A stretch of DNA of 37,644 nucleotides from Macrostomum lignano (GCA_002269645.1 NIVC01004702.1:1-37644); one strand, 5' to 3'; shown: positions 861 through 37,100, numbered from the stretch's first letter. Notes: a model not told the origin generated them from the sequence alone. A program made the numbers and translations.

Positions 861-1136
861 GTAAGAAGAATTTGGTTTAGTTTGTTCTTGTAGACTTAGA
901 ACTATCTTAGGGCTTTTACGTTTACGAAGTAGACTGGTAGTTAAGGATCGAACTGCATGTAACTCGTAGCTTGACTCAGTTCGAGTTATAGGTTTATAAT
1001 TATTAGACTAACTAAATTTGACTGGAGTGATAACTTCACCACTTACAAGCAGCCCGTTGCAGCCAGCTTAAAGTAGCTGGCATTCTCAGGGACCTTGATA
1101 GTTCTGTGGCTCTATCAAGAATTATATTGCGGTTTC

Positions 1137-1210
1137 GTAGCTGGCGCCCCGTCTGTAGCTGGCGCCTCCCCTCTGTAGCTGGCGCCTCTCCTCTGCAGCT
1201 GGCGCCCCTG
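1137..1210. repeat. Short tandem repeat of GTAGCTGGCGCC-containing units (18-20 bp, 4 copies)
   Basis: (GT/GC)AGCTGGCGCC occurs 4 times between 1137 and 1210. Confidence 0.7.
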
Positions 1211-1298
1211 CAAAATAATTGTGTTTCTGCCAGATTAAACTGCCCAAAAGAACAACATGTACTTTTTGTTCATGTGAAAAGCAATCTCACATTTTCAG

Positions 1299-7780: not shown

Positions 7781-8510
7781 ATTCTAATGAGCCACTTATT
7801 AATCATGGGTGCTGGTAAATTCATCTACTGGTAAATTTGTCAAATGGTAGCCTATATATATTTATCAGTATAGTACAGTATGTGCAGCAGTCTACATGCT
7901 CAGATATAATAATAGATTCATAAAATTTATGAGCCAAATTGTGTCATTGTAATGCTAGTTTTTAGGCACAGGACATGAAAATTGTCAATCATGATAGATA
8001 ATGCTTGCAGATTGTCTATTGCTGGAATGTCTTTTCACCAGATTGACTAGATAAAAGACAGCAGCGCACTGCAGTACCCAGCAGTCTGCCATATATAATA
8101 TGATAAAATATGAAATAAGATACAATTAAAAAGCAATGAAACCAAGAATCTTCCATGGTAACAACTAGCTAAGGGACCACAATTCCATAAGGCAGGATCC
8201 CTGGCAATCTTAATCAATTTTAATTTCAATCAGTTTTAATTATTTATTTCAACCAAAAATTAATACTTAAAAACTTTTTCTATAGCAAATATTAAAACCT
8301 TATTGCTTTTCCATTTGTTTGCATTTCTTACTTCTATATACTTCATTATACTGTACATTAGATACGCACTATGCCAACTATAATAAACTCATCAACACAG
8401 TTGACAAATAAAAAGTCAATGAGTTTACCCAGATCCATTAATCATATAGGCCTTACCAATACTCGTATACAAAACCAAAAAAGATTTAAATATAATATAA
8501 AATATTTAAA

Positions 8511-9322
8511 TAAGCCTTGACATCTCAACAATCCCGCATAAGCCTTGACATCCCAGGAATTCCCCCCCCATATGCCTTGACATCTCAGCAATTCTCCCTG
8601 TAAGCCTTGACATCAGGAATTCCCCCCCATATGCCTTGACATCTCAGCAATTCTCCCTGTAAGCCTTGACATCTCAGCAATTCCCCCAATAAGCCATGAC
8701 ATCTTAGATTGTCATGGAGCCTTGGAGTCTGAGCAATTTCCCGCATAAGCCTTGAAATCTTAGCAACTCTTCCCTGTAGCCTTAATGTCTCAGCAATTCT
8801 CCCAGCTGTAAGCCTTGACATCCCAGCAATTCTCCCAGTAAGCCTTGACATCCCAGCAATTCCCCATTAGCCTTGACATCCCAACAATTCCCCAATTAAG
8901 CCTTGATGTCCCAGCAATTCCCCATAAGCCTTGATATCCCAGCAATTCTCCCAAGTAAACCTTGACATCCCAGCAATTCCCCATTAGCCTTGACATCCCA
9001 ACAATTCCCCAATTAAGCCTTGATGTCCCAGCAATTCCCCATAAGCCTTGACATCCCAGCAATTCTCCCAAGTAAACCTTGACATCCCAGCAATTCCCCC
9101 AGCTATAAGCCTTGACATCCTAGCAATTCCTCATAAGCCAAGCCTTGATATCCCAGCAATTCCCCAATAAGCCTTGAAATCCCAGCAATTCCCCCATAAG
9201 CCTTGACATCCTAGCAATTCCCCCCATAAGCCTTGACATCCCAGCAATTCCCCATAAGCCTTGACATCTCTGCAAATCCCTCCATGCGTCTTAGCAGTTC
9301 TCTTTGTAAGTCTAGACATTTT
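8511..9322. repeat. Minisatellite, about 29-bp unit AAGCCTTGACATCCCAGCAATTCCCCAT
   Basis: More than 25 imperfect copies. A 4-unit block of about 117 bp is duplicated (CCTTGATGTC at 8901 and 9018). Confidence 0.95.
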
Positions 9323-11033: not shown

Positions 11034-13985
11034 TGATCACCCAGGAGCTGGTCAAATATGAAGATGCCGAATACGAAGTGGAAAGCATTGAAGATCACGA
11101 TTGGGACGAAGTTGACCAAACTATGCGCTATTTAATCAAATGGCGCGGCTGGCCAATAGAATGCGCTACGTGGGAGCCGGAGCCTGACTTAACGAACTGT
11201 CAGGAGCTGCTGAAAGAATACAAGAACTTCATCAGTGGCAAGAGTAGAAAGCGCAGACCTACGGCAGCTGAGGTGGCCGAATCATCCGAGAGAAGTAAGG
11301 CTAGGGTTCTTCAACTGTTGGACTGCATCAACTTTGATGACCTGACGCCGGAACGCTTTGAACAGGTGATTTTGGGCTGCGCTTTGGTGCGAAGCAAGTC
11401 CCTGGTTTGATTCATGGACTACTCAACTGGAAGAACGGGAAAGTGCGTTTTTTAGAAAATGTTTGTGAGGCAATGTATCATGTGAGGCATTGTTGACTGT
11501 GTAACCCTGTAACAATGTGTGTAACAGATATGATAAAATAGATTTATAAAACCAAATATTCGAGCACTTTGTACTTGTACAGGGGCCACTGTTTGTGGTG
11601 TAAATTAGACCTTAATCAACCACAGGTACTAAAATAACTAGATGGGCCACCCAGGCATATATACTTGGTAAAACAGCTTTCTACTTTCAGTTCAGTAGCA
11701 AAGAAGAATACATAAGCTATTTTTATAAGAGTAAAGGCAGCTGAAATGACTTTGATAAGTTTAGAAGCCCAAGCTTGCAGGCGTAAACAACTTGCTAATT
11801 GGTTCAGCAATAATGTACATTTGCCAGTCCACTGAAATGTACATGGCCGCTTTAGGCTGGAATTCCGAGAAAGGCAATAAAAATTGGGGCGGGGCGGGGG
11901 TAGTGTGGAAATGCGCGGTTGAAGGTTGAATCTGGGGGGGGGGGTAAGAGCCAATAAATGAGCCTTGGCTTTAAAAGTACATTAAAATGCTTCTCTTTAA
12001 CTTACTACTGAAGTGAAAGTAGCTTACACGCAAATGTGCTGAGTTCATCTAGTTATTCTATTATCTGTGTAACCAACTGACAGTAATGTGTTATTTATAG
12101 TTACTAACCAGTATTGAATAACAAGGCAAACTGTCTGTCTAATCAACAGGTTCTAGCGGAGACCCTGACCAAACGAGCTTTACAAAGCGTTGCTAAGCGA
12201 CGAATCCTGCCCAGTCAGAGTCGCATGATCGCCGGATCTAAGCGTAGTCTAGGTATTAAAATTCAAGCCGAACTCAAAAACTGGGAGCTGTTATTAAACG
12301 CTAACGAGCCTCGGGCTAAAATTGTTATTGAAAATAAAGTCGATCTCGAAGGACCACCTTTGGCGTTTACCTACGTTACTAAACGGGTGCCGGGACCTGG
12401 CGTGTCGATTCCTGACGATCCGGTACTTGGCTGCACCTGCACGGACTGCTACGAGGAGCGGCACTCGTGCGTAGCCAGTCACGTGCACAACGAAGGTCGC
12501 GTACCGTATACTAGGTGAGCTTCTATTATATTGATTTTTTGACAACTTATTTTGTTGTCACGATAATTAGAGACAGTTTTTTTCTACTGTTTTTAAGTAG
12601 TTTGTGCAGTGTCATTTAAATTTAACGTGAAAGCTAAAAATTTCCTTTTCTTGGGGTTTGCGACCTCATGAGTATATGGGGTTGAAAATGAACAACAAGC
12701 ATTTAACTCGACTGATGTCTAGCTCAGCCTATGAGAGAGCAGTAAGGAGAGAGGTTAAAGTCTGACGGATAAAACTCAGCCTAGGGGCAGACCCAATCTG
12801 TCTCAGCCTATGAGAGAGCAGTAAGGAGAGGTTAAAGTCTGACAGATAAAACTCAGCCTATGGGCAGGCCCAATCTAGCTCAGCCAATGAGAGAGCAGTA
12901 AAGACAGAGGTTGAAGTCTGACGGATAAAACTCAGCCTTAGGGGCAGGCCCAATCTAGCTCAGCCAATGAGAGAGCAGTAAGGAGAGAGGTTAAAGTCTG
13001 ACGGATAAAATTCAGCCTAGGGGCAGGCCCAATCTGTCTCAGCCAATGAGAGAGCAGTAAGGAGAGAGGTCAAAGTCAGACAAGAGGAAAGCCAAATTGT
13101 TTATCGGTCTGGCTGAGGGCTGGGGCGCCACCCCTTTTCTCTTGCTCGCTATGCACGCAAACTGTACATGCTCACCATGCTTGTAGGAAGGCGGCTGGCT
13201 ATTGGTGCAGCTCCAAAACTTAAAATATTCGTATTTTGAGAAAAATTTGCTTAAAATAAGAATGGCCATAGACAACTACCATTGTTTTTTTTACAAATTG
13301 CAGACAGGGCCGGCTGCCGAACGTGCACGCCAGTTTTCCCATACACGAATGCAATTCGTTGTGCAAATGCGGCCCAGATTGTCCGTTTCGAGTTGTACAG
13401 CGCGGCCGTCAGTTTGGTTTGGCCATCTATCGGACCAAGAATCGCGGCTGGGGTGTTCGCACTCTGCAGCGCATTCCGCGCGGCTCCTTCGTTGTCGAAT
13501 ATGTCGGCGAGGTGGTCACCTTTGAGGAGGCCGAACGTCGAGGTCTTGAGTACGATCGCCAGGCACAGACCTATTTATTTGACCTGGATCTAGACGGCGA
13601 GCCGGTGTATTCTGTAGACGCTCGGGACTATGGCAATATAGCCCACTTTCTGAATCATTCCTGCAGTCCAAATCTGACTATTCGTTGCGTCTACACTCAG
13701 TGCATCGATAAAGACTTGCCACTATTGGCTCTATTCGCTGCAGAGCCAATACCAAAAGGCGCCGAATTGACATTTGATTATCAAATGTCCGGCGCTATCA
13801 GTGCTGAACAGCAGCAGCAGCAGCAACAACAGCTTGGCGCTGATGATGCGTCAGAAAGCGCCGCCGAGAATGCCAGTGTGGTGAGCAGCAGTGTCGGCGG
13901 TGCCAGCAGCGTCAATGGTGGCGGCTTAGCGCGCATGCGATGCCTGTGCGGTTCAGCCAACTGCCGGCGATTCCTGTTTGATTGA
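11034..13985 (+). CDS. SUV39H: SUV39H/Su(var)3-9-type histone H3K9 methyltransferase; exons 11034-11365, 12150-12514, 13304-13985; first exon not located
   Basis: Chromodomain YEVESIEDH...YLIKWRGWPIECATWEPE; ENKVDLEGPP; pre-SET GCTCTDC...ECNSLCKCGPDC; SET RGWGVRT...EYVGEV...FLNHSCSPNL...ELTFDY; post-SET CLCGSANCRRFL. Intron phases match (0 then 2). Confidence 0.95.
12720..13080. repeat. About 79-bp tandem repeat, 4.5 copies, in a SUV39H intron
   Basis: CTCAGCC(T/A)ATGAGAGAGCAGTAA units start at 12723, 12802, 12879, 12959 and 13038. Confidence 0.95.
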
Positions 13986-15189: not shown

Positions 15190-15977
15190 GGTCAAGTGGC
15201 TTCTGCGAAGGTCAAGCGGTTCTAGGAAAGGTTAGATGGTTTTTTGGAAATGTCAGGTAACTTCTTGAAGGCTCAGGTGGCTTCTGGAAGATCAAGTGGC
15301 TTCTGGAAAGGTCAAGTGGCTTCTGGGAAGGTCAGGTGGCTTCTGGGAAGGTCAGGTGACTTCTGTGAAAGTCAGGTGACTTCTGGGAAGGTCAGGTGAC
15401 TTCTGTGAAAGTCAGGTGACTTCTGGGAAGGTCAGGTGGCTTCTGGGAAGGTCGAGTGGCTTCTGGGAAGGTCAGGTGGCTTCTGGGAAGGTCGAGTGGC
15501 TTCTGGGAAGGTCAAGTGGCTTCTGGAAAGGTCAAGCGGTTCTAGGAAAGGTTAGATGGTTTTTTGGAAATGTCAGGTAACTTCTTGAAGGCTCAGGTGG
15601 CTTCTGGAAGATCAAATGGCTTCTGGAAAGGTCAAGTGGCTTCTGGGAAGGTCGAGTGGCTTCTGGGAAGGTCAGGTGACTTCTGTGAAAGTCAGGTGAC
15701 TTCTGGGAAGGTCAGGTGGCTTCTGGGAAGGTCAGGTGACTTCTGGGAAGGTCAGGTGGCTTCTGGGAAGGTCGAGTGGCTTCTGGGAAGGTCAGGTGAC
15801 TTCTGTGAAAGTCATGTGACTTCTGTGAAAGTCAGGTGGCTTCTGGGAAGGTCAGGTGACTTCTGTGAAAGTCAGGTGACTTCTGGGAAGGTCAGGTGGC
15901 TTCTGGGAAGGTCGAGTGGCTTCTGAGAAGGTCAGGTGGCTTCTGGGAAGGTCGAGTGGCTTCTGGGAAGGTCAGGT
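15190..15977. repeat. G-rich 20-bp minisatellite TTCTGGGAAGGTCAGGTGGC
   Basis: About 39 copies. The variant block TCTAGGAAAGGTTAGATGG recurs at 15221 and 15541 (period 320 bp). Confidence 0.95.
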
Positions 15978-16083
15978 ATAGATAATTTAGAGGGTGTTTA
16001 ATTTTTTAAGATCGGATGATTGAGAAGTGGAAAGTTCAAGTGAATCTTCGAAATTGAGAAACTCATCCACTGTAAACCACCCC

Positions 16084-17283
16084 ATGCTGTCGCTAGCTAA
16101 CGCAGTGCTGCGCGGCTGGCAGTCGCCGGTGCGCCTGCTCGCGCATCGACAATGGTTGGCCATGTCGCATCGGAAACAGATGAAACTAGAATACGAGATT
16201 AACCTGGACTTTTCCTGGGTGCCAATCGACGAGAATGGCAGGCGGAAGCCTCTGATCTATTTGACAGATGCCAGCAAAACGCCGGAAGATGTGCTAAATA
16301 ATCTAGACAATTTTGATAAGCAGCGAATGCGCGAAATTGGCGAACAGATTGACATCCAGGCTGCTCTTGGCAAGTCTAGGGTGCCGGATAAGAGCAAGCT
16401 TACTAGCTTCGATTGGGTGCAGTTGTTGTCCTGCAATTCCACCGGTACATTGGGCAAGAAACTCTTTTACTTGGCCACAAAGCAGAACTCTGAGGCTAGC
16501 GCATTGGAGAAGAAAGCGATTAAAAAGAGAAGCACAGTGAAGCAGGAGTTGGCTCCAAGCTATGACTATATCCATCCTAGGATTGAAAAAACTGAAATTA
16601 AAGCATTCTACGATATGCGATTGATTCAGGAATACAAGTTCTGTCCATCTCTTGTATTCGACATGTCATTCCACGAGGAAATGAAGTTAAAGTTCCTAAT
16701 GGACTTCGCCAATCAATTAAGAGAAATCTTTCACACGAATCGCGAATCTGTAGAACCGTTTCAATTGCACTTTTGCAATCTGGCTAGGGATACTCAGCAA
16801 TACTACGTGCTTAATCGGGCGCTTAAAAGCTACGATTATGGCATTGGCGAGTTCTCTTCGCACGAAAGCTTTGAAGATAGTTGGCCATACGAATTCACTG
16901 ACGCTTGTTATACGTCGCTGTTTCCAGCCAAGGATCTGATCTACATGTCGCCGGATGCTAAATACGAAATGAGAGATTACGATCCTACTAAAGTGTACAT
17001 TATTGGCGGCCTAGTTGATCTGGGCGGCGGCTGCGTTGGCGCTACCAAGTCGAAGGCGACCCGTCAGGGCATTCGAAGTTTACGCCTGCCGCGCAGCATC
17101 GCGTCCAGGTCGTTGCCACTGAACATCTTCTACAACATTATACGGGATATTCGTCTAACCGGCTCCTGGGTAGAAGCTAGGAGGCACGTACCGAGACGGA
17201 TATCTGAGCAGCGAATTATTCAATCGCCTACTGCTCAGCAGTCACTGTTGCACGGGTATCAGCCACGGTCTGGAGGCTTCTAG
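16084..17283 (+). CDS. TRMT10C: Mitochondrial tRNA m1R9 methyltransferase / RNase P protein 1 (TRMT10C/MRPP1), single coding exon
   Basis: ATG at 16084 with an Arg-rich, acid-poor presequence. Trm10 domain: LVFDMSF...ANQL...NRESVEPFQLHFCNL...LIYMSPDA...VYIIGGLVD...LRLP...WVEARRHVPRR. ATTAAA at 17336. Confidence 0.88.
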   Translation: MLSLANAVLRGWQSPVRLLAHRQWLAMSHRKQMKLEYEINLDFSWVPIDENGRRKPLIYLTDASKTPEDVLNNLDNFDKQRMREIGEQIDIQAALGKSRVPDKSKLTSFDWVQLLSCNSTGTLGKKLFYLATKQNSEASALEKKAIKKRSTVKQELAPSYDYIHPRIEKTEIKAFYDMRLIQEYKFCPSLVFDMSFHEEMKLKFLMDFANQLREIFHTNRESVEPFQLHFCNLARDTQQYYVLNRALKSYDYGIGEFSSHESFEDSWPYEFTDACYTSLFPAKDLIYMSPDAKYEMRDYDPTKVYIIGGLVDLGGGCVGATKSKATRQGIRSLRLPRSIASRSLPLNIFYNIIRDIRLTGSWVEARRHVPRRISEQRIIQSPTAQQSLLHGYQPRSGGF

Positions 17284-18480: not shown

Positions 18481-19533
18481 ATGCTTCAAGCATTCAGACG
18501 AGCATTATTGTGCGCATCCAACTGTTTCGGTGGACACATCAACAAGCGATGGTATCCTAGACGGGGTACCTGGGTATTGAATCCGCCGCAGCCTTACCAG
18601 CTGCAGATGGACTTCTCTACTCCTTTGGCCATTATTAACTTCGACGATGGCTATCGAGCTGTACAGAATCTATTCGACAATCTGACTGACCTGCAAAAGT
18701 CACGGCTAGATTGTCTTCGAGTGCAGTTAGAGTTACTCAAGCCGTACGCATCGGAAAGTTTTTGTTTACCAGACTGTGATAAAATCTTTGACAAACAATG
18801 GCTGGAGTTGTTGGCTTGCAAAAATTCTAGGTCGTTAGATCGTCAGCTGTTTAAAATCTATCGACTTCAGATTGCGCACTCGAAGGATCCGCTGGCGAAT
18901 GTAGAAACAGAGCACGGCGCCGTACCGCTTTGGTGCATCAGGGACTGCTCAGCATTCTATAATTATAGACTTCAGTCTGAGCTGCAGTTCTGCGACAGAT
19001 TGATTATTGATTTGGCTTTCGATTCGATTATGTCGCCTAAAAGTCTCGCCTCGTTTGTGCACGAATTTCGTCACGCTATTCGTTTCAATCGGGAGAGTCG
19101 CCAGCCGTTTCGACTGCACTTGTGCGGTCCTCGATTGGCCGGCTCAGCCCAGTCAAAGTCTTTGTTTCGTATGCTTTTTCCCGGCGGTTTCAAGAGCAGA
19201 GAAGACTGGGAGAAAGGAATGCTAGCCGTTATGAACGAGCAATCGTTGTACGACATGTCGGATGGCTGTTTTTCTACTTTGTTAACCAATATTGACGACG
19301 TTGTCTACATTGTCCCGGGCTCGCGGAATCGTCTGAATGCTTACGATCCTCAGAAGACTTACGTCTTACCTGGATACGCCTATCGTCTGACGGAGATGCA
19401 GTCTGCGGCTGTGCAGCGAGCCAAGTCACTTGGTCTGAAATGCTACTCACTGCCCTGGAATGTTGATCCGCGCTTGTTCAAATTCATGCAAGCGATGCTT
19501 GCGTTCAAGAATAGACGATTCTTTGTTGAGTAG
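18481..19533 (+). CDS. Divergent TRMT10C/MRPP1 paralogue, probable pseudo-methyltransferase, single coding exon
   Basis: Colinear with 16084-17283 (WLELLACKN vs WVQLLSCNS; FYNYRL...LIIDLAF vs FYDMRL...LVFDMSF; NRESRQPFRLHLC vs NRESVEPFQLHFC). Presequence-like N-terminus, intact 350-aa ORF, AATAAA at 19617. Confidence 0.82.
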   Translation: MLQAFRRALLCASNCFGGHINKRWYPRRGTWVLNPPQPYQLQMDFSTPLAIINFDDGYRAVQNLFDNLTDLQKSRLDCLRVQLELLKPYASESFCLPDCDKIFDKQWLELLACKNSRSLDRQLFKIYRLQIAHSKDPLANVETEHGAVPLWCIRDCSAFYNYRLQSELQFCDRLIIDLAFDSIMSPKSLASFVHEFRHAIRFNRESRQPFRLHLCGPRLAGSAQSKSLFRMLFPGGFKSREDWEKGMLAVMNEQSLYDMSDGCFSTLLTNIDDVVYIVPGSRNRLNAYDPQKTYVLPGYAYRLTEMQSAAVQRAKSLGLKCYSLPWNVDPRLFKFMQAMLAFKNRRFFVE

Positions 19534-20218
19534 CTAAAAAGAAAGAGCTGTTAACTTTGTCGTTATCATCGATTGGTGTTTTGTATCGTTGAAAATTTTA
19601 GAGCAAAAAAACTTTCAATAAAATATACAGGCATTTGACCACCAGCGGTTTACCGTCCTTTCGGATTTCAGCATTGGTCTTTTTGTAAAGTTGCGTAAAT
19701 CGTCAAAATTACACTTTTTTCGTTTTTTCTTTCTTTACTGCATTGAGAGATAACCGTCTTTAGGAGCATATGTTAAGTTTTCTAGTTAAGCACAATCGGA
19801 AAAGCCTTTATTCAAAATTTAGAATTTTTATATTGCCTTTAAATGCGACTGCACTGCAATGAAGTTGTTTGGTATCTGCTGACTCTTAAACTTCTTAATC
19901 TCAACTAGTCTAAACTAAGCCAGGCAACTCTTCTTCGATAGCTGTTCTGTTTTCTTTTTTCAGAGCCGACATTTATAATTTCCCTTTAGGCTTGAAGTGG
20001 TTGGCTGTGACATGATAGAATGTAGAGTTTCTCCTATAAGATTCCGCTGCCACTGATAAAGGCTCTGAGCTGCTGCCTGTATTTGCTTCACTGTTTTAAA
20101 ACAGCGGATTCAAAAGCTCGACTATCTTAGCAAGATAGCAACTCTGTCCAAGCTAGACTGTTAAACTAACGCAGCAATTTTGTACCATTGCTAAATTGGG
20201 TTCATTGAATCAACTGTC

Positions 20219-23200
20219 ATGGCTTATAGTCGAGCAGTGTTAGCCCTGACACTGCTACTGGCAGCAGTTCCTCTTGCTCTGACTGCACCTGGACCTGCCG
20301 CTCGACCCAACAACAACAACAACGACCGATTGTTAAGTCGAGTCCGACGAATAATCGGCAATGCGGACGAGGTCAATGAAGAAGAGAAGCAGAGACTGTT
20401 TCCATTCTCTGTGACCATTACCGGCTCCTACTATGTTAGGGTGCCAAAAAAGATTGGCTTCATCACTTTGAATGTTCCTGTTAAGAGGCAAGTGCACTGC
20501 GGTGCCAGCATACTGGATAGGAATCATGTTATCACGGCGGCGCATTGCCTGCTGGATGAAGATGGGGACCTGTGAGTGCATTAGCGCCCGTGTAAATGTT
20601 TTATTGGTTTTGGACCAGGGTTAGGCAATCTTTTTTACTTTAAGGGCCAGACAGAGAATCTACTAAATAACTGCGGACCGAAGGAGGGGTGAGAGAGTGG
20701 AGATGGGATGAGATAATGAAAAAGAGAGGAAAGTAGAAGAGAGAGAGTTGAGAAGAGTGGAAAGGAGAGGAGAGAATATAGGAAAGGGAAAAATGGAGAT
20801 GGGATGAGAGAAGGGAGATGAAATGAGAGAATTGATAGAAGAGGAGAGAGTGGAGAAGAGAGGAAAATGGATAGGAAAGGGGAGAATGAAGAGGAGATAA
20901 TAGAATGGAGAGAAGAGAGGAAAGGAGAGGAGGGTAGAATAGAGAAGAGAGGAGAGAAAAGAGAAGAGATTTTTCGAGAGAAGAGAGCTGAAAAGAGTCA
21001 AACCTTGAGCGGGCCGGATTGCTATTGTGAAGTTTCAAACGACCCGATGGCCAGAGAGAGGCTTCACGGGCCAGAGTTAGCCCACACCTTGTTTAGACTA
21101 TATGCTGTAGATACTCACTTATATTACTCACGCCTTTCAGAATCGCTTCAACTAGTTGGAAAGTGTACATGCATAGTATTAAACGTAAGCCATCGATGTA
21201 CGAACGCATGAAGAGCTGGTTTGCTCGCAAAGCGTCCAAGTGAGTACGCGTTATTAAGCTTTGTAGGTCTTTGTAGCTTCTCAGCGATTGATCGATGCTT
21301 CTCGTGCAAAAAGTGTGTACAGTTAATAAAAAATAGCATTTCGATGCCCACTTGATCTAAACACCCAGGTTAACGGGAAAGAACATAGCGGAAAATGTGG
21401 CCCATCACGCTCATTTTAAGAAGATTCACATTCATCCAAGCTACGATAAAGGTGAGGTACTACTTCACTATACTTTCTCAGGTTCTTACTGACTTTTGAA
21501 TCGGATATCGTCATTAAAACTCCAATGGCCTGGTTATCAGCCCATCAATTAGCTCGTAATATACGCCCAACAAACAAAAATGCTACTCCCCAGGCAGCAT
21601 CCTACACGATGTAGCCGTCATTGAGACGTCCGATATTCGTTACGACCAAATCAGCCATGCCGGGCCCATTGGTCTGCCGCCGAGCGAGGTAGTGCGGGCC
21701 GACGGTCCAACCCCTGGCACGCTGTGTGACTACTCTGGCTGGGGCTGCACTCGTCCGAAGGGCAGCGTTCGAGAGAAACTACTGATGGCGCAGTTCACTG
21801 TTAAACCGTTGGGCGATTGCACCAGCGTCTTTCAGGGAGGAGATTCGGCGTTTTGGCAAAAGAATTTGTGCGTTCAGGCCAATAGGACGACAGTGTGTCC
21901 GGTGAGAAGAAGCTATAGCAATATGGAAGCGACTCCTTGTGGACTTATTTATTTGTGGACTCCTTGTGGAGTATTTAAAAACCATAGGATGTAGCAAACA
22001 ACAGAAGGGTATAGCTTTGACTTACTTGACTTAGCTGCAGGGCTGTCCCGGAGGGGACACAGCGGGAAGGCGCGGGCGCCCATTCCGCTAGTCCCTGAAC
22101 GGCCGACGCGTCGCTATGGACGGAGGGTTGGCGCCGCCCAGGGAGGTCCCCCAGTGTCGCCAGCAGCTATAGTGCTCTCTGGAAAGGAGAGTTCAGCCCT
22201 GCGGGTGGCCCGAAGGTAGCGCATGAGCTGATTAAAGTTTTCGGGTTTGCACGCTTCAGTAATAGATGTGTGTGGCCCGAGGTAAGTGAGTCTGGCCCGC
22301 GTGAAGGCGGGACAGATGCTGACGAAATGCTCAGCGGTTTCGTCACCTGAGTTGCAGAAACTACAGGTGGCGTTGGTGGCGTTGCCCTGCAGGTACTGGT
22401 GCCTGGAGAAGCAGCCGTGACCAGAGAGGGTCATGGTGGCAGCCCGGATGTCTCTGCGCGAGAGGCGCAAGAGGAGCTTCCGGAGCTGGTGAGAGGGCTG
22501 AGGGACAGCGCCTCTGGATTGCCTGCAGGTAGTGCAGTTCGCCCAAGTCGAGCGGTGCTGGGTCCTGATCCACGCTTTGATGCGCGAGTCGATGACACAG
22601 CCAGGAATCGAAGGGTATAGCACACAACAGCAGAGTATAGCAAACAACAGCAGAGTATAGCAAACAACAGAAGGGTATAGCACACAACAGCAGAGTATAG
22701 CAAACAACAGCAGAGTATAGCAAACAACAGAAGGGTATAGCACACAACAGCAGAGTATAGCAAACAACAGAAGGGTATAGCAAACAACAGAAGGGCATAG
22801 CAAACAACAGAAGGGTATAGCAAACAACAGAAGGGTATAGCAAACAACAGAAGTGTATAGCAAACAACAGAAGGACATAGCAAACAACAGAAGGGTATAA
22901 CAAACAACAGAAGGGTATAACAAACAACAGAAGGGTATAACAAACAACAGAAGTGTATAGCAAACAACAGAAGTGTATAGCAAACAACAGAAGGGCATAA
23001 CAAACAACAGAAGGGTATAGCAAACAACAGAAGTGTATAGTAAACAACAGAAGGGCATAGCAAAGAACAGAAGGGTATAACAAACAACAGAAGGGTATAA
23101 CAAACAACAGAAGGGTATAACAAACAACAGAAGGGTAAAGCAAACAAAAGAAGGGTATAGCAAACAACAGAAGGGCATAGCAAACAACAGAAGGGTATAG

Positions 23201-24051
23201 CAAACAACAGAAGTGTATAGCAAACAACAGAAGGGCATAGCAAACAACAGAAGGGCATAGCAAACAACAGAAGGGTATAACAAACAACAGAAGGGTATAA
23301 CAAACAACAGAAGTGTATAGCAAACAACAGAAGTGTATAGCAAACAACAGAAGGGCATAGCAAACAACAGAAGGGTATAGCAAACAACAGAAGTGTATAG
23401 TAAACAACAGAAGGGCATAGCAAAGAACAGAAGGGTATAACAAACAACAGAAGGGTATAACAAACAACAGAAGGGTATAGCAAAGAACAGAAGGGTAAAG
23501 CAAACAACAGAAGTGTATAGCAAACAACAGAAGGGCATAGCAAACAACAGTAGGGTATAGCAAACAAAGAAGATAGCAAACAACAGGTATAGCAAACAAC
23601 AGAAGGGTATAGCAAACAACAGAAGGGCATAGCAAACAACAGAAGTGTATAGCAAACAACAGAAGGGCATAGCAAACAACAGAAGGGTATAACAAAGAAC
23701 AGATGGGTATAACAAAATAGCAAAGATGTAGGATGTAGAAGCGTGTAGAATATCACAGAAGAGTGAAAAAAGCTAACAACAAACCTATTCTAGAAGACTA
23801 AGACATTATTAAATTGTGTGCAGAATCGGTCTTTCAACACTAAAATGTTTATTTTCTCAAATCAATTGTCTTTTCAGGGAGACAGCGGCGGCGGTCTCAG
23901 GTGTGAGCACAACGGTCAACCCTATCTGGCTGGCATAGCTTCCTCCGCGGCCACTGGAGCTAATCCGGAGCTTTATCCGGCTAATTTCATGCGGATTACC
24001 GGCTACATTAGCTGGATTAGGGAGACTATGGCGCTTAGTAGCGCCAGCTAA
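20219..24051 (+). CDS. Secreted S1 (chymotrypsin-fold) serine protease, 338 aa; exons 20219-20571, 21141-21239, 21369-21451, 21594-21901, 23878-24051
   Basis: Signal peptide, RVRR|IIGN activation site, and catalytic triad TAAHC / HDVAV / GDSGG. All four introns are GT-AG with matching phases (2,2,1,0); exon total is 1017 nt. Confidence 0.92.
20616..21090. mobile_element. Second copy of the hAT-type GA-filler MITE, in protease intron 1
   Basis: Left CAGGGTTAGGCAATCTTTTTTAC..AAGGGCCAGA. Shares AAACCTTGAGC..GGATTG..ATTGTGAAGTTTCAAA with 2846-3281 and ends CACCTT. Degenerate TSD TTTTGGAC / GTTTAGAC (6/8). Confidence 0.8.
21995..23728. repeat. 20-bp minisatellite GCAAACAACAGAAGGGTATA in protease intron 4, interrupted by the LINE fragment
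   Basis: One unit at 21995-22014 and about 55 units at 22610-23728. A variant block repeats at 23041 and 23401 (period 360 bp). Confidence 0.95.
22015..22609 (-). mobile_element. 5'-truncated non-LTR retrotransposon (I/LOA-group-like ORF2 C-terminus plus 3' UTR)
   Basis: Minus frame reads LSRRDIRAATMTLSGHG...CSFCNSGDETAEHFVSICPAF (C-x2-C-x8-H-x4-C knuckle), stop at 22114, then a GC-rich UTR and a TAAGTCAAGTAAGTCAAAG tail. GAAGGGTATAG flanks it at 22004-22014 and 22610-22620. Confidence 0.85.
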
Positions 24052-25944
24052 CTCATCCTCGGGCCGATATTCTATTTATTATTGTCTAATTGTTGACTCA
24101 AAAACACTAAACAATACGAGAATGAGGCTTCAATGTTATTTACGTGTTGCTTTTGTTGATCAAATAAATAATGAGAAAACTACATTTTATTCATACTTAT
24201 TAACCATAAAGTATGTTGGCGATGTTGAAAGACAACATCTGTAAATTTTATATTATCAAAAGAATGCGACTTTTTAAATTTAATTATGACTCATAACTAT
24301 GACTCAGTTTTTTAGATACGCTGAACGAGTTTTATAAAGTTTTTTATGATTTGAATAGTTAGGATGTGGTCGCTCAATAAATTAGCAACAGTTCAGAATA
24401 TGAGCGTAAACTTATTTAATTATATGGGCGTAGCAACTATTATGGAAAGTAAACTACGCAGTTCGAAGCTTTATCTGTTCTCAAACAAGCGAGAATATCT
24501 GCCAGATTACTCTGAGTCTAATTGATAGGCGGCTAGTTGTTTATTTTACGTTGATATTCTGTGGCCGACTTGAGTTATATTAACAAAGTTATTATGCGTA
24601 TATATTTAATGTTGATTGATAACAATATTTGTTTGTTTACATGTGCCGTTTCTTGTTAATGTGTACGTTACGTGCGTGCTAGAATGATTAGTTATTCTAA
24701 AAAAATTTCTTTACTCACTTCGCTTCCTTCACGTTAATGAAAGAAGATAAAGTAAGAATTTTTGTTGTAGTTCATACTTTATGAAGATAGATTAGTTTGT
24801 GAAAATTAGCAAACGAAATGTGTCGGTATTACAGTTTGGAAGCCTATTTACTCGTAATTCAATTTGCAAGCGTTTCACACCCATTATACCTGTGTAGATG
24901 ACACACTGTATAGTTAGTTAAACTTCTCACAAAAGGATCTCTTCTCACTCATTCAACAACTCAAGCAAACCCATTTGCTGCTCATTAAAAGCGTAGACCA
25001 AGTTTTTTCAAATCTAAATTTAGCTCTAGCTATACATAAATGAAATAGCTAAAACCAGTCTATAAACTATGGCACCCGTTCATAGGCGTTGCCACGCCTG
25101 ACACTTTCTCTCCACTGTATTAATTAGTAGTGCTAGCAGTGTCATCCCATTGAACCTGTGCAACCTCCATACACGCCATGGCTATAGATTAGATTAAAAG
25201 AATACCCAGGCATATGTAATGCAACGAGTAAGTAGTGGACAAAACGACAGCAAAACTCTCAGGTAGGTGCATAGGAAAGGTAAAGAGAATACCCCCGCCT
25301 CTCTATAAACCCTTGTGACCCCCCTCATTCTCTCCCACGCTCTGACTGACAACTTTATAGGAGCGTAGAGTCTGTCAAAGCGCGGTGTTGAGGTAGTCAG
25401 TTTGCTAGGCAATGGGGCATTGTTCAAGTGCTCAAACTGAGCAGACACTGCTCGGCATATGCTCTTCTTATTCTTCATCTGCGGGTGAGAAAGTTTCCTG
25501 CGACTGTGTTTTCCAATTTTTATCGGATTCTCACATGTCTAATTTGTTTTCTATTCTTTGCAGAGCAATAGTTCTGTCCTGTGTCCCTATCCGACTTGTG
25601 CAGCCAATGACGAGATGAATATCAACTAATACTGTATACATAGCGAAGCCATCATTGGTTGCCATATTTTCCATATATAGGTGCCCATTTTTGGTTATTT
25701 TTCAACCTAGTACTCGTACAACGTAGTCAATTGATTGTCTCTCAGTGCTGTCAACTAACTACTATCTTCAGATCTGTGGCTGTGTAAGTACCTTTCTGCC
25801 CATGCCTGAAATGTTTTCGTCCTGGGGATTATTATGAATGTTTTTTTACTCAAACCTTTTAACCTTTTAACCGTTTTACTCAAAGAGCCCAGAGGCTTGA
25901 AACCGGTAGCCTACTTTCAATAAAATAATTTAACACGCCGTGAC

Positions 25945-25946
25945 CT

Positions 25947-25982
<36 letters not shown>

Positions 25983-25991
25983 ATATATATA
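25945..25991. repeat. (CT)n(AT)n microsatellite
   Basis: CTCTCT... run followed directly by a TATATA run. Confidence 0.9.
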
Positions 25992-26030
25992 GTTTAGGTA
26001 TAGAAATCCATCAAATTTTGACAGTTAATG

Positions 26031-26800
26031 TAGCTTTTTGCAGCCCATTTGGGCTCACGCGCATTGAATTTAATCCAAGATCCGTTTGCCACGAGCTTAA
26101 TGTAACGGAGCTAATTTTGTCTATGGTAGCAAGGCTGGCACAGCGGCATTTAATTTGGTCCAACAAGCATCAATTTGGTCCATAGCTTTATTTGCATCTG
26201 CTGCGGAAGAGGAGCAAGATCAGCTCCAAAATTGTGGACCATATGCTAGGCTGTCGAACCATTGGCTTGTGATCGAAGCACTCGACAGAGGTGAACACTC
26301 AAAGGACATTGCAAGGCTGTTGAATGTAAAAGAAAATATGATTTACAGCATCCATCAGCGCGTTGAAACCACTGCCAGCAGAGAGTCTGCGAAAGGCTGG
26401 CAATCGCCAAGGCAAGTTGCTCGAGAGCCTCAGGTCCAGCTGCTACTCGATGCAGTTGAGAAACCCTCTGTTAACGGTGCAGAAAATGCAGCAGAAGTTG
26501 AAGGAACAGTTCCAGTTGGTTATCAGATTTCGACTTTGAGCAGAGCTCTGGAAAAGCGACTGAAGATTGTTGGTAGAGACGCTGACATTCCAGCAGTACG
26601 CAACAACCTGCAGACAGTTGCGAAAAGGCAAGCATTTTCCGAATGGCTCACGAGCGTTTGGACCAAATTGATGCTTGTTGGACCAAATTAAATGCCGCTG
26701 TGCCAGCCTTGCTACCATAGACAAAAGCTCCGTTACACTGGTAAACTTATCTTGGATTAAATTCAATGCGCGTAAGCCCAAATAGGGCTGCAAAAAGCTA
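26031..26800 (+). mobile_element. Deleted IS630/Tc1/mariner-like DNA transposon; only the HTH region of the transposase remains
   Basis: Inverted arms about 26031-26182 and 26659-26800 (TAGCTTTTTGCAGCCC...). Internal frame VIEALDRGEHSKDIARLLNVKENMIYSI...STLSRAL...RN...KRQAFSEWL resembles a paired-HTH N-terminus, apparently frameshifted, with no DDE domain. Outer termini are unclear. Confidence 0.65.
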
Positions 26801-26967
26801 TGATTCAGCCATCATTAATTTTAGCTACCTGAGAAAATCTTATATGGGGGAATTAAAAATCAACTCCTGTCCTGATTTATCAAATAAATATGCAAATTTA
26901 TACAATCTCGCATTTCTACAGCGAAGCAATTTGCAACTTTTGCCACGATCTTGTGCTCCATCAAAGG

Positions 26968-28457
26968 ATGCTGTTAACTCTGACACTTCTGCTAGCGAGT
27001 GGCTTATTAATGCTGGAGCCAGTCTCACCGATGGGAATCTATGCCGACTCTAAGTACGACCCAACTAAGCCAGCAGTTGACCAGCCTCCGACAACTACAC
27101 TAGCTGGCAACCATCGGGGCATTCATCATGAGCCGGTGGTGGCGAAGTTTCTGCCTGACAGCATCTCGCAGAGCGGTTGGTAGACTTTTTAGCATTCAAT
27201 TAATTGTGTGCTTTTGATGTTTGTTGTTGATTGAATAATTCAATCTGCCACTCAGCTGGAAAACACAATGTGGTTTATCACAAATCTTTTCTCTACTTGA
27301 TTGATGCAATTTTGCAATTATGCAGCTCGTAATTTGAGCACACCTAAAATATGGTTTTAAAATTTTATTGCAGATAAGCTTCGCGCTTTCCTGGAATGTC
27401 GTCGGGAATGCATAGCCAAATGCGACCGCCTGGTGTACATCTACACGGATAAGAAGGTAATGATGGTGCGAGACCCAATGCGTACTTAAATTTATAACTA
27501 GTCTAAGATGTTCCTGATATGCAATATTTACCAAACTTCACTCTTCGATTGGATATTTTAGGAGTACTGTCACGATTGCATCCGGCAGTGCATGCTGTCG
27601 TTTCTGCAGCAAGCAAAAAGCCTTGGTGTAAGCATTTGTAGCTCAATTGTGCTCGTTTCTCATAGCGGGGACATTAGTAACGGTCTCGGAAATAACGAGA
27701 TTATAACGCCAGCCCCTCAGCTTCCCAGCCTCCCAGATCCTCAGCTGCTAGGCCAGCCTCTCAGATTCTCAGTTGCTGGGCCAGCCTCCCAGATTCTCAG
27801 TTGCTATGCCAGCCTCCCAGATCCTCAGTTGCTGGGCCAGCCTCCCAGATCCTCAGTTGCTGAGCCAGCCTCCCAGAGTGGCAGTTGCTGGGCCAGCCTC
27901 CCAGATCCTCAGTTGCAGGGCCAGCCTCCCAGATCCTCAGTTGCTGGGCCAGCCTCCCAGATCCTCAGTTGCTGCGTCAGCGTCACCACCTGACCTCCCA
28001 GATCCTCAGTTGCTGGGCCAGCCTCCCAGATCCTCAGTTGCTGGGCCAGCCTCCCTGATCCTCAGTTGCTGGGCCAGCCTCCCTGATCCACAGTTGCTGG
28101 GCCAGCCTCCCAGATCCTTAGTTGCTGGGCCAGCCTCCCAGAACCTCAGTTGCTGCGTCAGCGTCACCACCTGACCTCCTAGATCCTAAGCTCATACCAG
28201 TAGCCGCTCGCCAACTCACTCAAATCTGCACCACTTCAATCCAATTCCAGATCGAATTCAGCTCACAACCAGCCAGCAAAGATCAAATGCAAGGCGACGC
28301 TCCGGTTGTCGACAATGACGACGAGAAAAGGAAAGGCCGTCGTCGAGGTGGTGGCCGTAAGAGACGGCGCAACAAGCGAAAGCAGCGTCGCGAACGACGC
28401 CGGAAGGAGAAGCAGCAACGACAGGCTCTGCTGAAGAACTGCATCGTGCACAAATAA
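26968..28457 (+). CDS. Orphan secreted protein, 187 aa, with a 6-Cys motif and polybasic C-terminus; exons 26968-27175, 27374-27456, 27562-27627, 28251-28457
   Basis: Signal peptide MLLTLTLLLASGLLMLEPVSP. Three GT-AG introns with matching phases (1,0,0); exon total 564 nt ending in TAA. This gene is not recovered whole by the ORF track. Confidence 0.78.
27716..28190. repeat. 28-bp minisatellite GGCCAGCCTCCCAGATCCTCAGTTGCTG in intron 3 of the orphan secreted gene
   Basis: About 15 copies. A GCGTCAGCGTCACCACCTGACCT variant block occurs twice (near 27974 and 28155). Confidence 0.95.
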
Positions 28458-29681
28458 GAATGTTTTGATCCAGAGCTGCAAGGCGTATTAAAACTTAATC
28501 AGCTAATCCAGTTATGGCAATTAAGAATTCATTGGCTAGAAAGCGAAGGAAGAAAGCGATATACTAAACTGATATCTTGCGTTTTGCGGCGAAAACCGGT
28601 CCTCCTTATCGAAGGTTTTCAGAGGCGATTGATTGTAAATACTGACCTGGTATTGAAGAACCGTTTGGAAACTCGATAGGCATAATATATATTAAACACC
28701 AAACCGATCCTATGTAAGGTCAGCTCTGTGGATCAACATAGTGGTTCCGACATTCCAAAATAATACCTCATCATCATCAAGCTGTTGTTGTTAAATTATT
28801 TGTGTTTTTTTCGTTCTCAGCATCGCAAACTAAGTGTTGAATTTGAGCACCTGAAAAAACGTATTTCAATACACGCAACTATTAGCTTACTGAAGCCGTG
28901 ATGCTCTTGACAAGACAAAAACCCAAATTATTTTAGACTTCATTGATTTGCTTTTGCATATGAAAAGTGAATTGGAATTTGTTCTATATTTGAAAATCAT
29001 TCAATTTATTTAATAACGCTTTTTAACGAGTAAAAGAAAATCTACGAAATTTACAACAATTTTAACACAAATCGAAAGCTTTTAAGTAAAACATGCGAAA
29101 TAGAAAATAAAAAATGCATCGTTCTAAGCTAGCTGATAATAAAAGAAATTTCATAACTTAGTCAGTTTATCTGCTAAAAAACGAAATATAAGCTGTTACT
29201 GAAGGCCACTGTTCATTACAGACAGGCATTTTCTTATAGCTGCTGATAAGCAAGTGAGAAAGGTTTGTTATAAAATTGAGTAAAAAAATAACAAAGGTGA
29301 TTTCCTACACAATGATAACATTAGAAAATAGAAAAGAAAGTTTGTTTAAATCGATTCAAAGAGCACAAAGTTACAACTTTCATGGAAAAACATTGACGAG
29401 ATAAGATTATTTACGTGCTTTATGCACTAAAGTAAAAATTTCCCATTTTTGAACCTAAACAATGCTTCGAATTTTTGTCAGCTTGCTTTTTAGGGTTAGT
29501 TGTTTAACAAAAAATATTTTTAACATTTGCTTATTTCCATATGTTTATATCTTTTGTTGGTAAGTAAGAAAAATAATCCTTAGAAAATATATTAATGTTG
29601 CAAACAAACTAAATTTCTAATGCATAATGCAGAAATTACAGCCTTTAAACTGATCAACTATGGTCATTGTTGTCGTGATCG

Positions 29682-34101: not shown

Positions 34102-37100
34102 TCACAATAAAGGGCGCCGCGAAACTTGTTCGAGATTAACGCTGTCGGCATTACAGAATCTCCTCGCTATTCCAGCCGCCATCTCGACCAGACTTGCTTG
34201 ATGCGGCCTGTTGCTGTTGCTGCCCACTTGAATACTGCTGTCGAGTCTCTGCAAAGTGAGACAAGTACATGCAAGTTCATCTCGGATGGGGTGCAGGGTG
34301 GCTGTCTGTTTGATCTGAGATGGGGTGGGTGTCGGTCTATTTGATCTGAGATGGGGTTGGGTCTCGGTGTGTTCGAACTGAGATGGGGTGAGTTTCGCGG
34401 TCTGTTTGATCTGAGATGGGGTGGGTGTCGGTCTGTTTGATCTGAGATGGGGTTGGGTGTCGGTCTGTTTGATCTGAGATGGGGTTGATGTCGGTCTGTT
34501 TGATCTGAGATGGGGTTGATGTCGGTCTGTTTGATCTGAGATGGGGTTGATGTCGGTCTGTTTGATCTGAGATGGGGTTGATGTCGGTCTGTTTGATCTG
34601 AGATGGGGTTGATGTCGGTCTGTTTGATCTGAGATGGGGTTGATGTCGGTCTGTTTGATCTGAGATGGATGGGGTGGGTGTCGGTCTGTGTGACCTGAGA
34701 TAAATGGGGTAGGTGGCGGTCTGTTGCATCTAAATGGGATCGTAAAAGTCTTTTTGACCTGGGAATGGTTTTTTAAATGAGTTTGTTGCACACACAGCAT
34801 ATTCATGGGCATTTAACTCGAAACAAAGTAAACAGATCTCATTTGTTATTCTGCATTGTATATGCTTTAGCTTGTAAAAGCGATAATGTCTCAAAAAAGG
34901 TGAGAGCTAGTTCATTCATTTCATCATTTGCTAAATATGAAAAGCTTACATGCAGATTATATCAAAGAATGTTATTTTGTATAAAAAATCGTAATTGAAC
35001 AATACATGCAAGATCCCAGAATGGCATCATCCGAGATCTGCAGATTTAATAGCCAAGCAATTTACCTGTTGGTCTCATCAATGGAATTTGGCCAGTTGGG
35101 TATCCAAATACTGGCACAGGTCCTACGAATTCGAAGTCACAAAGAAATTTTTGTCCAACTTAAGCAACTAGGCTGGACACAGCTGCTGAAACATCTGTAA
35201 ATATTTATGGCCTCACTCGGCTATGCTGGACACAAATGCAATATCTGTAAATGTCTATGGCCTCACTCGGCTATGCTGGACACAGATGCAATATCTGTAA
35301 ATGTCTATGGCCTCACTCGGCTATGCTGGACACAGATGCAATATCTGTAAATGTCTATGGCCTCACTCGGCTATGCTGGACACAGATGCAATATCTGTAA
35401 ATATTTATGGCCTCACTCGGCTATGCTGGACACAAATGCAATATCTGTAAATGTCTATGGCCTCACTCGGCTATGCTGGACACAGATGCAATATCTGTAA
35501 ATGTCTATGGCCTCACTCGGCTATGCTGGACACAGCTGCAATATCTGTAAATGTCTATGGCCTCACTCGGCTATGCTGGACACAGCTGCAATATCTGTAA
35601 ATATTTATGGCCTCACTCGGCTATGCTGGACACAAATGCAATATCTGTAAATGTCTATGGCCTCACTCGGCTATGCTGGACACAGATGCAATATCTGTAA
35701 ATGTCTATGGCCTCACTCGGCTATGCTGGACACAGATGCAAAATCTGTAAATGTCTATGGCCTCACTCGGCTATGCTGAACACAGATGCAATATCTGTAA
35801 ATGTCTATGGCCTCACTCGGCTATGCTGGACACAGCTGCAATATCTGTAAATGTCTATGGCCTTACCTGATTCAGCTCGCTGTCTCTTTTTCTTTTGCCG
35901 CCGCCTGTGAAGAGCCGGCGCAGGCTGCTGCTGAGACTGCGATTTCTGCGCTGCCCGCTGCCGAATTCGTCGGTAGGAGGAGGATTCGCCTGAATCGGTT
36001 GCTGCTGATAACCGTCTCCGTAGCTGTAGGGCTGAATTGAGTAGCCGCTAGTACCAGTCTGCTGGGCGTAGTAGCTTTCATCTGAGAACACCTGGTCTAT
36101 GCTTGGCGAACGTTGTTGCTGCGGCTGCTGCTGCTGCTGTTGTTGCTGTTGTTTTCCAGTTGACTTCCGGTCGGGACCACGGAACACTCGACGGAACCGA
36201 CTGGCAAAACTGCCAGATCGGGACGCTTTCTTGCCTACGTAGGGTTGAGGATTTGAAATGATCGTTATCAAAATCCCAAATGACCAAATTGACTAACAGA
36301 ATAATCACCTTTCGATTTTGTTGTACCGCGACCATCGTCTTCGCCGGGAATCTGAAAAAGTACGCAATAAAACTACGTGTTTTTATTCTGATCGTTTTGT
36401 CTTTCGATGCATATGAATGTACTTCTATGATCAAGGGCAGCACACGTTCACATTTGTGACTACATGGATTATTACTTTTTTTGCATTTTTTCTGAGCAGA
36501 CATTGTACATAGCAAGCAAAACATTGTAACTCTCCTAGGTGACTTTATAAGCTGAAGGACAACAGTTTATAAAGATTGACAAGGGTGACAGAAGGTCAGG
36601 AAACTTCTGATAGTATTCAATACAAACATCGTGACAATAAGAAAGTAAATGTCCAATTTAAAAAAGGGTTTGGTCGGCCTTCTCTGAGCTTGGTTAAATC
36701 ATGTCTTACCGACAGATTGAGTCTGCCTAATGATTGTGAGCAGGCACTCCAATTCACTGCAGGGTATGGAATAAGTCGGCATGTAGCCACGGTATTATCG
36801 TGCAAACTATATAATATTCAAATCATAGCAATCATCAAATCAAATACACTGTAGGCAATAATTAATATAAGCGACGCAAATTTCGAACAAACCATTCCAC
36901 AAAACTTGGATTTTGACCATTTTAGAAAAAAGAAATAGCCGCACATGTAATAACCTGTGTAGCTGTTAATTATAACCGCAACCAAAGTATCTAGATGTAA
37001 TAAATGAGATTATACGTGTACATGCAATAATTTCAGGTATGGTATGTACAATCAACAGGTTTTAAGGACGATTTGTGTATTAGTCCAGTAAATTAAAGAG

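Follow-up and report, generated by a model that had tools for sequence, protein, structure and literature searches.

A six-cysteine protein of Macrostomum lignano with a hydrophobic leader, a predicted helical-hairpin core and relatives in other spiralians

What kind of protein is encoded by a short, multiply spliced gene at positions 26968-28457 of a contig from the flatworm Macrostomum lignano, and does it belong to any described family? The stretch of DNA considered here, referred to below as the window, is the entire 37,644-bp contig NIVC01004702.1 of assembly GCA_002269645.1 (Mlig_3_7). An initial annotation, made from the sequence alone, proposed that it contains a hidden four-exon gene for a secreted cysteine-rich protein with an extreme polybasic tail. 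We find that the gene is already present in the public annotation, as an uncharacterised hypothetical protein with an RNA sequencing (RNA-seq)-guided model, and that on sequence comparison its product is a member of an unnamed six-Cys family, so far only spiralian, represented in flatworms, both free-living and parasitic, and in one nemertean and one brachiopod. As to function, we see about an even chance that the protein is the precursor of a disulfide-stapled helical-hairpin peptide of ~55-70 residues, released by convertases and acting as an extracellular ligand.

The gene has five exons in total, of which four are coding. The coding exons on the + strand, at 26968-27175 (208 nt), 27374-27456 (83 nt), 27562-27627 (66 nt) and 28251-28457 (207 nt), are separated by GT..AG introns with pyrimidine-rich acceptors, in phases 1, 0 and 0, and join into an uninterrupted coding sequence (CDS) of 564 nt, that is 187 codons plus TAA. 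The ATG at 26968 and the last stop base at 28457 are exactly where the initial annotation had placed the start and end, and its four coding exons are correct to the base; what it lacked is a further, non-coding 5′ exon at 25701-25783, which is spliced to an acceptor at 26921/26922 and gives a 5′ untranslated region (5′UTR) of 129 nt with no upstream ATG. The features of the gene are as follows.

25674-25679, + strand: TATA-like box TATATA, read from the sequence, 22-27 nt upstream of the annotated 5′ end.
25701-25783, + strand: exon 1, non-coding 5′UTR, donor GGCTGT/gtaagt; translated within the GenBank protein P0001 (see below), junction rebuilt exactly.
26922-27175, + strand: exon 2, CDS from 26968; hydrophobic leader (residues 1-20), Pro/Thr-rich spacer and first base of codon 70; phase-1 donor AGCG/gttggt.
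27374-27456, + strand: exon 3, 83 nt, predicted core helix 1 DKLRAFLECRRECIAKCDRLVYIYTDKK (C78, C82, C86); introns of the paralog and of Echinococcus agree.
27562-27627, + strand: exon 4, 66 nt, predicted core helix 2 EYCHDCIRQCMLSFLQQAKSLG (C100, C103, C107); from the paralog, Echinococcus and AlphaFold2.
27725-28187, + strand: non-coding 28-bp minisatellite within the last intron, ~16 units, consensus CCAGCCTCCCAGATCCTCAGTTGCTGGG, from Tandem Repeats Finder (TRF).
28251-28457, + strand: coding part of exon 5 in the joined CDS; acidic-patch linker, polybasic tail, conserved C-terminus and TAA.
28323-28421, + strand: polybasic block, residues 144-176, from the sequence; AlphaFold2 helix 154-180.
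28428-28451, + strand: C-terminal octapeptide LLKNCIVH, which includes the seventh Cys and is shared unchanged with the paralog.
28487-28492, + strand: ATTAAA, candidate poly(A) signal by pattern only, 30 nt past the stop.

The protein encoded by these exons is 100% identical, over its full length, to the GenBank entry ‘hypothetical protein BOX15_Mlig021116g2, partial’ (Mlig021116.g2; P0001), which carries 43 additional N-terminal residues of translated 5′UTR, the first 28 of them from exon 25701-25783. The description of the gene as hidden is therefore apt in so far as it is invisible to a bacterial-style list of open reading frames (ORFs), but not with respect to GenBank. The Mlig_3_7 annotation was made from RNA-seq with StringTie/TACO and a de novo transcriptome, gene boundaries being taken from trans-splice and poly(A) reads (PMC5730564), and thus a spliced transcript with exactly this structure, which is also the splicing that had been proposed, lies behind the database entry, as far as the annotation record goes. 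A second contig, NIVC01003376.1, is a collinear copy of window 15689-37644 with 99.6-99.9% identity, which fits the redundancy of Mlig_3_7 reported in the same paper (PMC5730564). In the UniProt model A0A1I8IQH9 (P0002) exon 4 is missing, which would lose three of the six core Cys; we considered it as an isoform, but half of the invariant core would be deleted, and an artefact of prediction or a variant without function is the likelier explanation. The GenBank identity, the exon sizes and phases of a paralog and the intron positions and phases of an Echinococcus ortholog, both described below, confirm the gene model far beyond chance.

Some details of the locus can be added here. From its position alone we would infer a promoter role for the TATATA box. 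A trans-spliced start at 25701, suggested by the ‘.g2’ in the gene name, was also considered as a candidate; the upstream box would fit an ordinary promoter instead. Inside the 5′UTR intron, window 26155-26691 (+), there is a 178-aa ORF with a weak, sub-threshold match to the winged-helix domain HTH_29 (E = 0.0077), possibly the remnant of a transposase-type gene lodged there. The satellite that the initial annotation saw between the exons is the 28-bp array inside the last intron; it occurs only in that intron of the two near-identical copies of the gene (15 and 14 units with <=4 mismatches) and was not found at the paralog locus or elsewhere in the window. Its unit is partly self-complementary (CCCAGC...GCTGGG).

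The predicted protein opens with a hydrophobic N-terminus, MLLTLTLLLASGLLML, with a Kyte-Doolittle 11-residue maximum of 2.24 at residue 6, and a Pro/Thr-rich spacer separates this leader from the Cys core, KLRAFLECRRECIAKCDRLVYIYTDKKEYCHDCIRQCMLSFLQQAKSLG, in which Cys residues occupy positions 78, 82, 86, 100, 103 and 107 (C78-x3-C82-x3-C86-x13-C100-x2-C103-x3-C107). The core is mildly basic (pI 8.6). It is followed by an acidic patch, DAPVVDNDDE (residues 135-144), and by a basic block (144-176) with 22 K/R in 33 residues and a pI of 12; the tail includes three R-x-[KR]-R sites (P1 at 158, 162 and 169) together with 12 overlapping dibasic positions. The C-terminus, QALLKNCIVHK, contains the seventh Cys at 183 and ends C-I-V-H-K, with the Cys fifth from the end. 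The signal peptide proposed by the initial annotation is present as an N-terminal hydrophobic leader, its Pro/Thr spacer, six-Cys spacing, acidic patch and polybasic tail are all found in the translated product, and the two peptides that it quoted recur verbatim as residues 76-108 (LECRRECIAKC...CIRQCM) and 145-173 (KRKGRRRGGG...RRRKEK).

The likely shape of the core was approached with AlphaFold2. With a two-sequence alignment helices are predicted at 68-92, 97-117 and 154-180, with a mean predicted local distance difference test score (pLDDT) of 55; with ten core sequences the same two core helices are obtained, at pLDDT 67 and a predicted template modelling score (pTM) of 0.47. By their spacing (i, i+4, i+8 and j, j+3, j+7) the Cys of each triad share one helix face, and the position sums 78+107, 82+103 and 86+100 come to 185, 185 and 186, which is the register of an antiparallel pair; from the one-face triads and antiparallel sums together a three-rung disulfide ladder would follow. 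We therefore predict, with moderate confidence for the helices, a two-helix hairpin that would be stapled by disulfides. The helical hairpin suggested by the initial annotation is in this way supported by the antiparallel helices and the Cys sums, with the disulfides remaining predicted ones.

The case that the core defines a family comes from an exhaustive HMMER scan of 1.84 billion representative sequences with a profile of the two Macrostomum cores only, which returned 12 proteins at E<=1e-3. One of these, P0007, a 1016-aa repetitive ENA protein that the profile matches in 13 stretches, was rejected as a low-complexity repeat artefact. Family members have profile E-values from 1e-40 to 7.5e-6, and the relatives are from: 1) Trematoda, namely Schistosoma haematobium, Clonorchis sinensis, Opisthorchis viverrini, O. 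felineus, Paragonimus westermani, Fasciola gigantica and F. hepatica; 2) Cestoda, namely Schistocephalus solidus, Echinococcus multilocularis and E. granulosus; 3) Nemertea, with Lineus longissimus; and, 4) Brachiopoda, with Lingula anatina, all of them labelled ‘uncharacterized’ or ‘hypothetical’. Word-indexed protein searches matched Macrostomum proteins alone, and a ten-sequence core profile gave one match and added nothing. Molluscs, annelids and planarians may have more distant members, and the family may be remotely connected with a named one.

A 17-sequence alignment covering three phyla contains ten invariant columns (F75, C78, R79, C82, C86, C100, C103, C107, Q114 and A115), and L104, M108, F111 and G119 are nearly invariant. 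The pattern F..C[RK]..C...C.{13}C..C...C is matched by 17 of the 17 members, the core motif then continuing M-x2-F-x2-Q-A. Precursors are short throughout, about 100-200 aa, and every full-length member has a Kyte-Doolittle 11-residue maximum of at least 2.0 within its first ~30 residues. One further relative, from run SRR25726911, is encoded by an uninterrupted ORF on a 988-nt contig that is probably a transcript; the database protein (P0004, contig positions 240-728) reads TGA as Trp under a non-standard code, whereas standard translation would stop at 680, so that the true product is probably 146 aa. For Lingula, an older MetaClust model (P0015, 207 aa) has two tandem six-Cys cores and the RefSeq model (P0006, 119 aa) has one; the gene structure and C-terminus given for this species are thus provisional.

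Gene structure is shared as well. The E. multilocularis gene has all three of its coding introns identical in position and phase to those of the window gene, as has the paralog described below: one of phase 1 lies five codons before the invariant Phe, the inter-helix loop has one of phase 0 (two residues ahead of the fourth Cys), and a second of phase 0 comes after the conserved Gly. These shared positions mean that in flatworms the conserved domain is exactly two micro-exons (residues 70-119). In the Lingula gene the phase-1 intron lies four codons further upstream and there is none between the helices.

Outside the core the members vary. In trematodes and cestodes MP[KR]R directly precedes the core and KR, RR or RRRR clusters follow it, so that convertase-type basic sites stand on both sides of the core, whereas in the window protein they stand only after it. 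Neither Macrostomum protein has a dibasic site ahead of the core, and the tails of both are greatly enlarged. Lineus has KKKRKRK after the core and the current Lingula model ends right after it; most members have a basic cluster downstream of the core, and orthologs are without the C-terminal octapeptide. Other taxa have a short polybasic tail and the Lingula model has none; the extreme form of the tail thus appears to be an elaboration of the Macrostomum lineage, and the extreme tail to which the initial annotation gave prominence is, on these alignments, not a feature of the family.

Within M. lignano itself there is a paralog, BOX15_Mlig001697g4 (P0003), of 194 aa, with leader, core, basic tail and the LLKNCIVH end. 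At its locus on NIVC01000873.1 (L003) the internal exons are exactly 83 and 66 nt with phases 1, 0 and 0, and the downstream neighbours are a CCDC23-like gene and a C2-domain gene, as on the sister contig of the window; these common neighbours identify the window gene and the paralog as syntenic duplicates. The paralogous intervals, L003 6001-18721 and window 25701-28457, arose by segmental or whole-genome duplication, and the first coding intron measures ~11 kb in the paralog against 198 bp in the window gene. The paralogs are ~50% identical overall and 64% over the core. By the Nei-Gojobori method the 61-codon core of the pair has dN = 0.235, dS = 1.13 and dN/dS = 0.21, a ratio that indicates purifying selection, and the dS of ~1.1 together with the ~50% identity makes this duplication much older than the 99.6-99.9% identical copy on the second contig. 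The octapeptide LLKNCIVH, common only to these two Macrostomum proteins, differs in 1 of 24 nt; the paralog terminates immediately after it, as CIVH-stop. A CaaX prenylation signal of the K-Ras4B type, which that end might suggest, was rejected, since CIVHK is the end of the window protein and each of the two has a leader of the type that directs entry to the endoplasmic reticulum (ER).

Does this framework correspond to anything already described? Against Pfam the window protein has no match at E<=10 and the 17 members give scattered noise only at E<=1, which at HMMER sensitivity excludes eclosion hormone (PF04736), the CHH/ITP/MIH neurohormones (PF01147), attractin (PF08037), ShK, insulin and the small Tim proteins. 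The ten-sequence profile has zero matches among PDB sequences; NF-YB, matched there by the two-sequence profile at E ~0.5, was dismissed as chance, its alignment dropping a Cys column. A Foldseek search of the AlphaFold2 core against the PDB gave no described family. Literature searches on the gene ids, the ortholog locus tags, the run accession and the core motifs returned nothing relevant, and the gene ids were not found in the supplements of three M. lignano expression papers. On these null results the family is undescribed as far as Pfam, PDB, Foldseek and the literature show, and a hit to a known family, which the initial annotation had named as evidence against its proposal, did not appear.

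Comparison with known secreted peptides is nevertheless instructive. Eclosion hormone and CHH/ITP are likewise made as small secretory precursors with dibasic sites and give a helical six-Cys, three-disulfide peptide of ~55-75 residues. The framework of eclosion hormone is C-x3-C-x2-C-x12-C-x3-C-x10-C and that of CHH is C-x16-C-x2-C-x12-C-x3-C-x8-C. The window protein, set against these, has C-x3-C-x3-C-x13-C-x2-C-x3-C and a predicted ladder topology, and the opinion of the initial annotation that its spacing is unlike either family holds, there being also no Pfam match. Attractin, the Aplysia pheromone solved by nuclear magnetic resonance (NMR), has two antiparallel helices and three disulfides in ~55-60 residues. 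The attractin family of water-borne pheromones thus resembles the window protein in consisting of secreted spiralian proteins with two helices tied by three disulfides, but it differs in Cys spacing and signature motif, gives no Pfam match and lacks a polybasic tail. The twin CX3C small Tim proteins (PF02953) and the plant alpha-hairpinins, which are defence peptides, share a helical hairpin with Cys one turn apart and an inner and outer disulfide; they have two disulfides, however, as against the three predicted here, and no sequence or profile match connects them. Moreover, small Tims reside in the mitochondrial intermembrane space and have no leader; in the window protein a hydrophobic leader stands at the N-terminus and each predicted helix has three Cys. 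For the polybasic tail, the nearest parallels are the long isoforms of VEGF/PDGF and the class-3 semaphorins, in which such a tail with furin sites governs matrix retention and is removed by convertases, the semaphorin tails including a dimerising Cys. The ligand domains of those proteins have unrelated folds (cystine knot and sema), and the likeness is an analogy of layout. On this basis we rate the six-Cys framework as an apparently new one among secreted disulfide-rich peptides.

We propose the following mechanism. The leader would direct entry into the ER, where the core may fold into two antiparallel helices held by the three-disulfide ladder C86-C100, C82-C103 and C78-C107. Enzymes of the furin or prohormone-convertase type would then cut at the multibasic sites past the core, and in the neodermatan orthologs an additional cut might be made at the conserved MP[KR]R just before it, so that a hairpin peptide of about 55-70 residues would be freed. 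This peptide may act as an extracellular signalling ligand, whether hormone-, neuropeptide- or growth-factor-like, on a putative receptor. In Macrostomum the tail could be the source of cleavage sites, could retain uncleaved protein on sulfated glycans, or both, and the unpaired Cys183 within it could give a covalent dimer. The size and layout of the members (precursors of ~100-190 aa, one conserved Cys peptide and variable flanks) are typical of peptide-hormone precursors. The narrower reading, that these are orphan, spiralian-restricted peptide hormones or growth-factor-like ligands with a new three-disulfide helical-hairpin framework, is a tentative one, to which we give roughly one chance in three.

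Several observations weigh against a convertase-released ligand. The leader is judged by hydropathy, and the window protein shows neither an obvious clean -3/-1 cleavage site nor a dibasic site ahead of the core. The AlphaFold2 confidence is just moderate (mean pLDDT 55 for the full protein and 67 for the core), and the best Foldseek match of the core in the PDB, at E = 2.1, is among generic helical pairs, the fold being too generic to discriminate. Molluscs and annelids were without a match in the scan with the two-sequence profile, an odd gap if the hormone were ancestral to spiralians, and neither the Lineus nor the Lingula sequence occurs in any of the 27 supplementary files to a spiralian neuropeptidome (Thiel et al., 2021; PMC8557429). 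All the functional steps set out above, finally, are ones that we infer.

If the protein is not processed, it could be a matrix or cell-surface protein, such as a cofactor anchored to glycosaminoglycans, a seminal or egg-associated protein of reproduction, or an escort to some other secreted factor, with the tail retaining it and Cys183 dimerising it. We consider this unlikely, although it has a precedent in the polybasic C-terminal tails that hold the long isoforms of VEGF/PDGF and class-3 semaphorins on heparan sulfate, and although the identity of LLKNCIVH in both paralogs suggests that the very end of the protein has a function and is not thrown away as a pro-peptide; the tail is dense with convertase consensus sites, orthologs retain dibasic sites around the core and not the octapeptide, and a reproductive role in particular has no expression link to reproductive tissue, the gene ids being absent from the supplements searched. 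Rather doubtful, too, is a role in secreted host defence, in which the Arg-rich helix would be a membrane-active or nucleic-acid-binding effector and the hairpin either a second antimicrobial module or, with the acidic patch, a neutralising pro-domain. The composition of the tail (22 of 33 residues K/R, pI 12, predicted helical) is what such an effector might have, the acidic patch directly precedes it as in many cationic-peptide precursors, a leader is present, and disulfide-stapled helical hairpins such as the plant alpha-hairpinins are a known antimicrobial scaffold. Yet it is the Cys core that is conserved and not the tail, which is short or different elsewhere and absent in the Lingula model; the pI of the core is just 8.6, copy number in the family is low, selection on it is purifying (dN/dS 0.21) and its Cys spacing is invariant in three phyla, endoparasites included, whereas immune effectors are usually fast-evolving and lineage-expanded.

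The remaining explanations we hold to be less probable still. It is improbable that the protein is not secreted at all, with the hydrophobic stretch a membrane anchor or non-functional, the six Cys and His101 binding metal and the tail serving nuclear or nucleolar targeting or RNA binding: the tail does resemble an arginine-rich nuclear or nucleolar localisation signal, motifs such as CxxxC and CxxC can serve as ligands of Zn or Fe-S clusters and the paralog formally has a CaaX-like CIVH end, but each full-length ortholog has the N-terminal hydrophobic leader, the tail is not conserved (the Lingula model has none), the window protein ends CIVHK, which is not a CaaX box, and there are no Pfam zinc-finger or small-Tim matches. 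A universal leader combined with a dispensable tail argues against a nuclear role. That the protein is a venom or toxin, used to catch prey or in defence on the model of the Cerebratulus B-neurotoxins and scorpion kappa-hefutoxins, is very improbable indeed. These too are small, secreted, disulfide-stapled helical hairpins, one group being nemertean, and one of the present relatives is from a toxin-rich nemertean, L. longissimus. However, they differ in Cys number and spacing; no helical-hairpin toxin structure is among the Foldseek PDB matches at E<=10 and no Pfam toxin is matched. Among the species with orthologs are tapeworms and flukes, which are endoparasites, and a brachiopod, which feeds by filtering, and introns and residues are conserved. 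Here the phyletic pattern and the purifying selection point to an endogenous function. Conservation between free-living and endoparasitic species, low copy number and the dN/dS of 0.21 argue against fast-evolving defence and toxin roles alike, and overall the data lean to an endogenous ligand under conservation, more than to a toxin or antimicrobial peptide in rapid evolution.

The rest of the contig offers ordinary neighbours with no evident link to the six-Cys gene: a septin GTPase exon at window 1106-2227 (+; Pfam Septin, E = 2.7e-77) and a SET-domain exon at 13323-13985 (+; E = 2.7e-24). Two tandem genes for TRM10-type tRNA m1G methyltransferases are called at window 16027-17283 and 18481-19533 (+), and for the sister contig, at 99.6% identity, the listed gene is instead one with a trypsin domain, at the equivalent of window ~20217-24040, so that the copies are annotated inconsistently. 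The contig is unusually rich in minisatellites, at 8509-9280, 12718-13081, 15190-15977, 22610-23716, 34296-34701 and 35168-35863, with periods of 30/58, 79, 20, 20, 31 and 50 bp respectively and up to ~56 copies; the long ORFs at 22114-23756 (-) are mere translations of a 20-bp array.

Small disulfide-rich secreted proteins are common, and the gene itself, already deposited, is unsurprising. What is new is the grouping of this gene, its paralog and about a dozen ‘uncharacterized’ spiralian proteins as one family, with an invariant six-Cys framework and conserved introns, for which no Pfam model, solved structure or literature was found. M. lignano has working RNA interference (RNAi) and transgenesis, and is thus a tractable species in which to study the function of the family. 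Should the product be a signalling ligand, it would add an orphan system to spiralian endocrinology, one present in medically and veterinarily important parasites, and if this is true it would constitute a previously unrecognised flatworm signalling axis extending from Macrostomum to Schistosoma, Fasciola, Clonorchis/Opisthorchis and Echinococcus.

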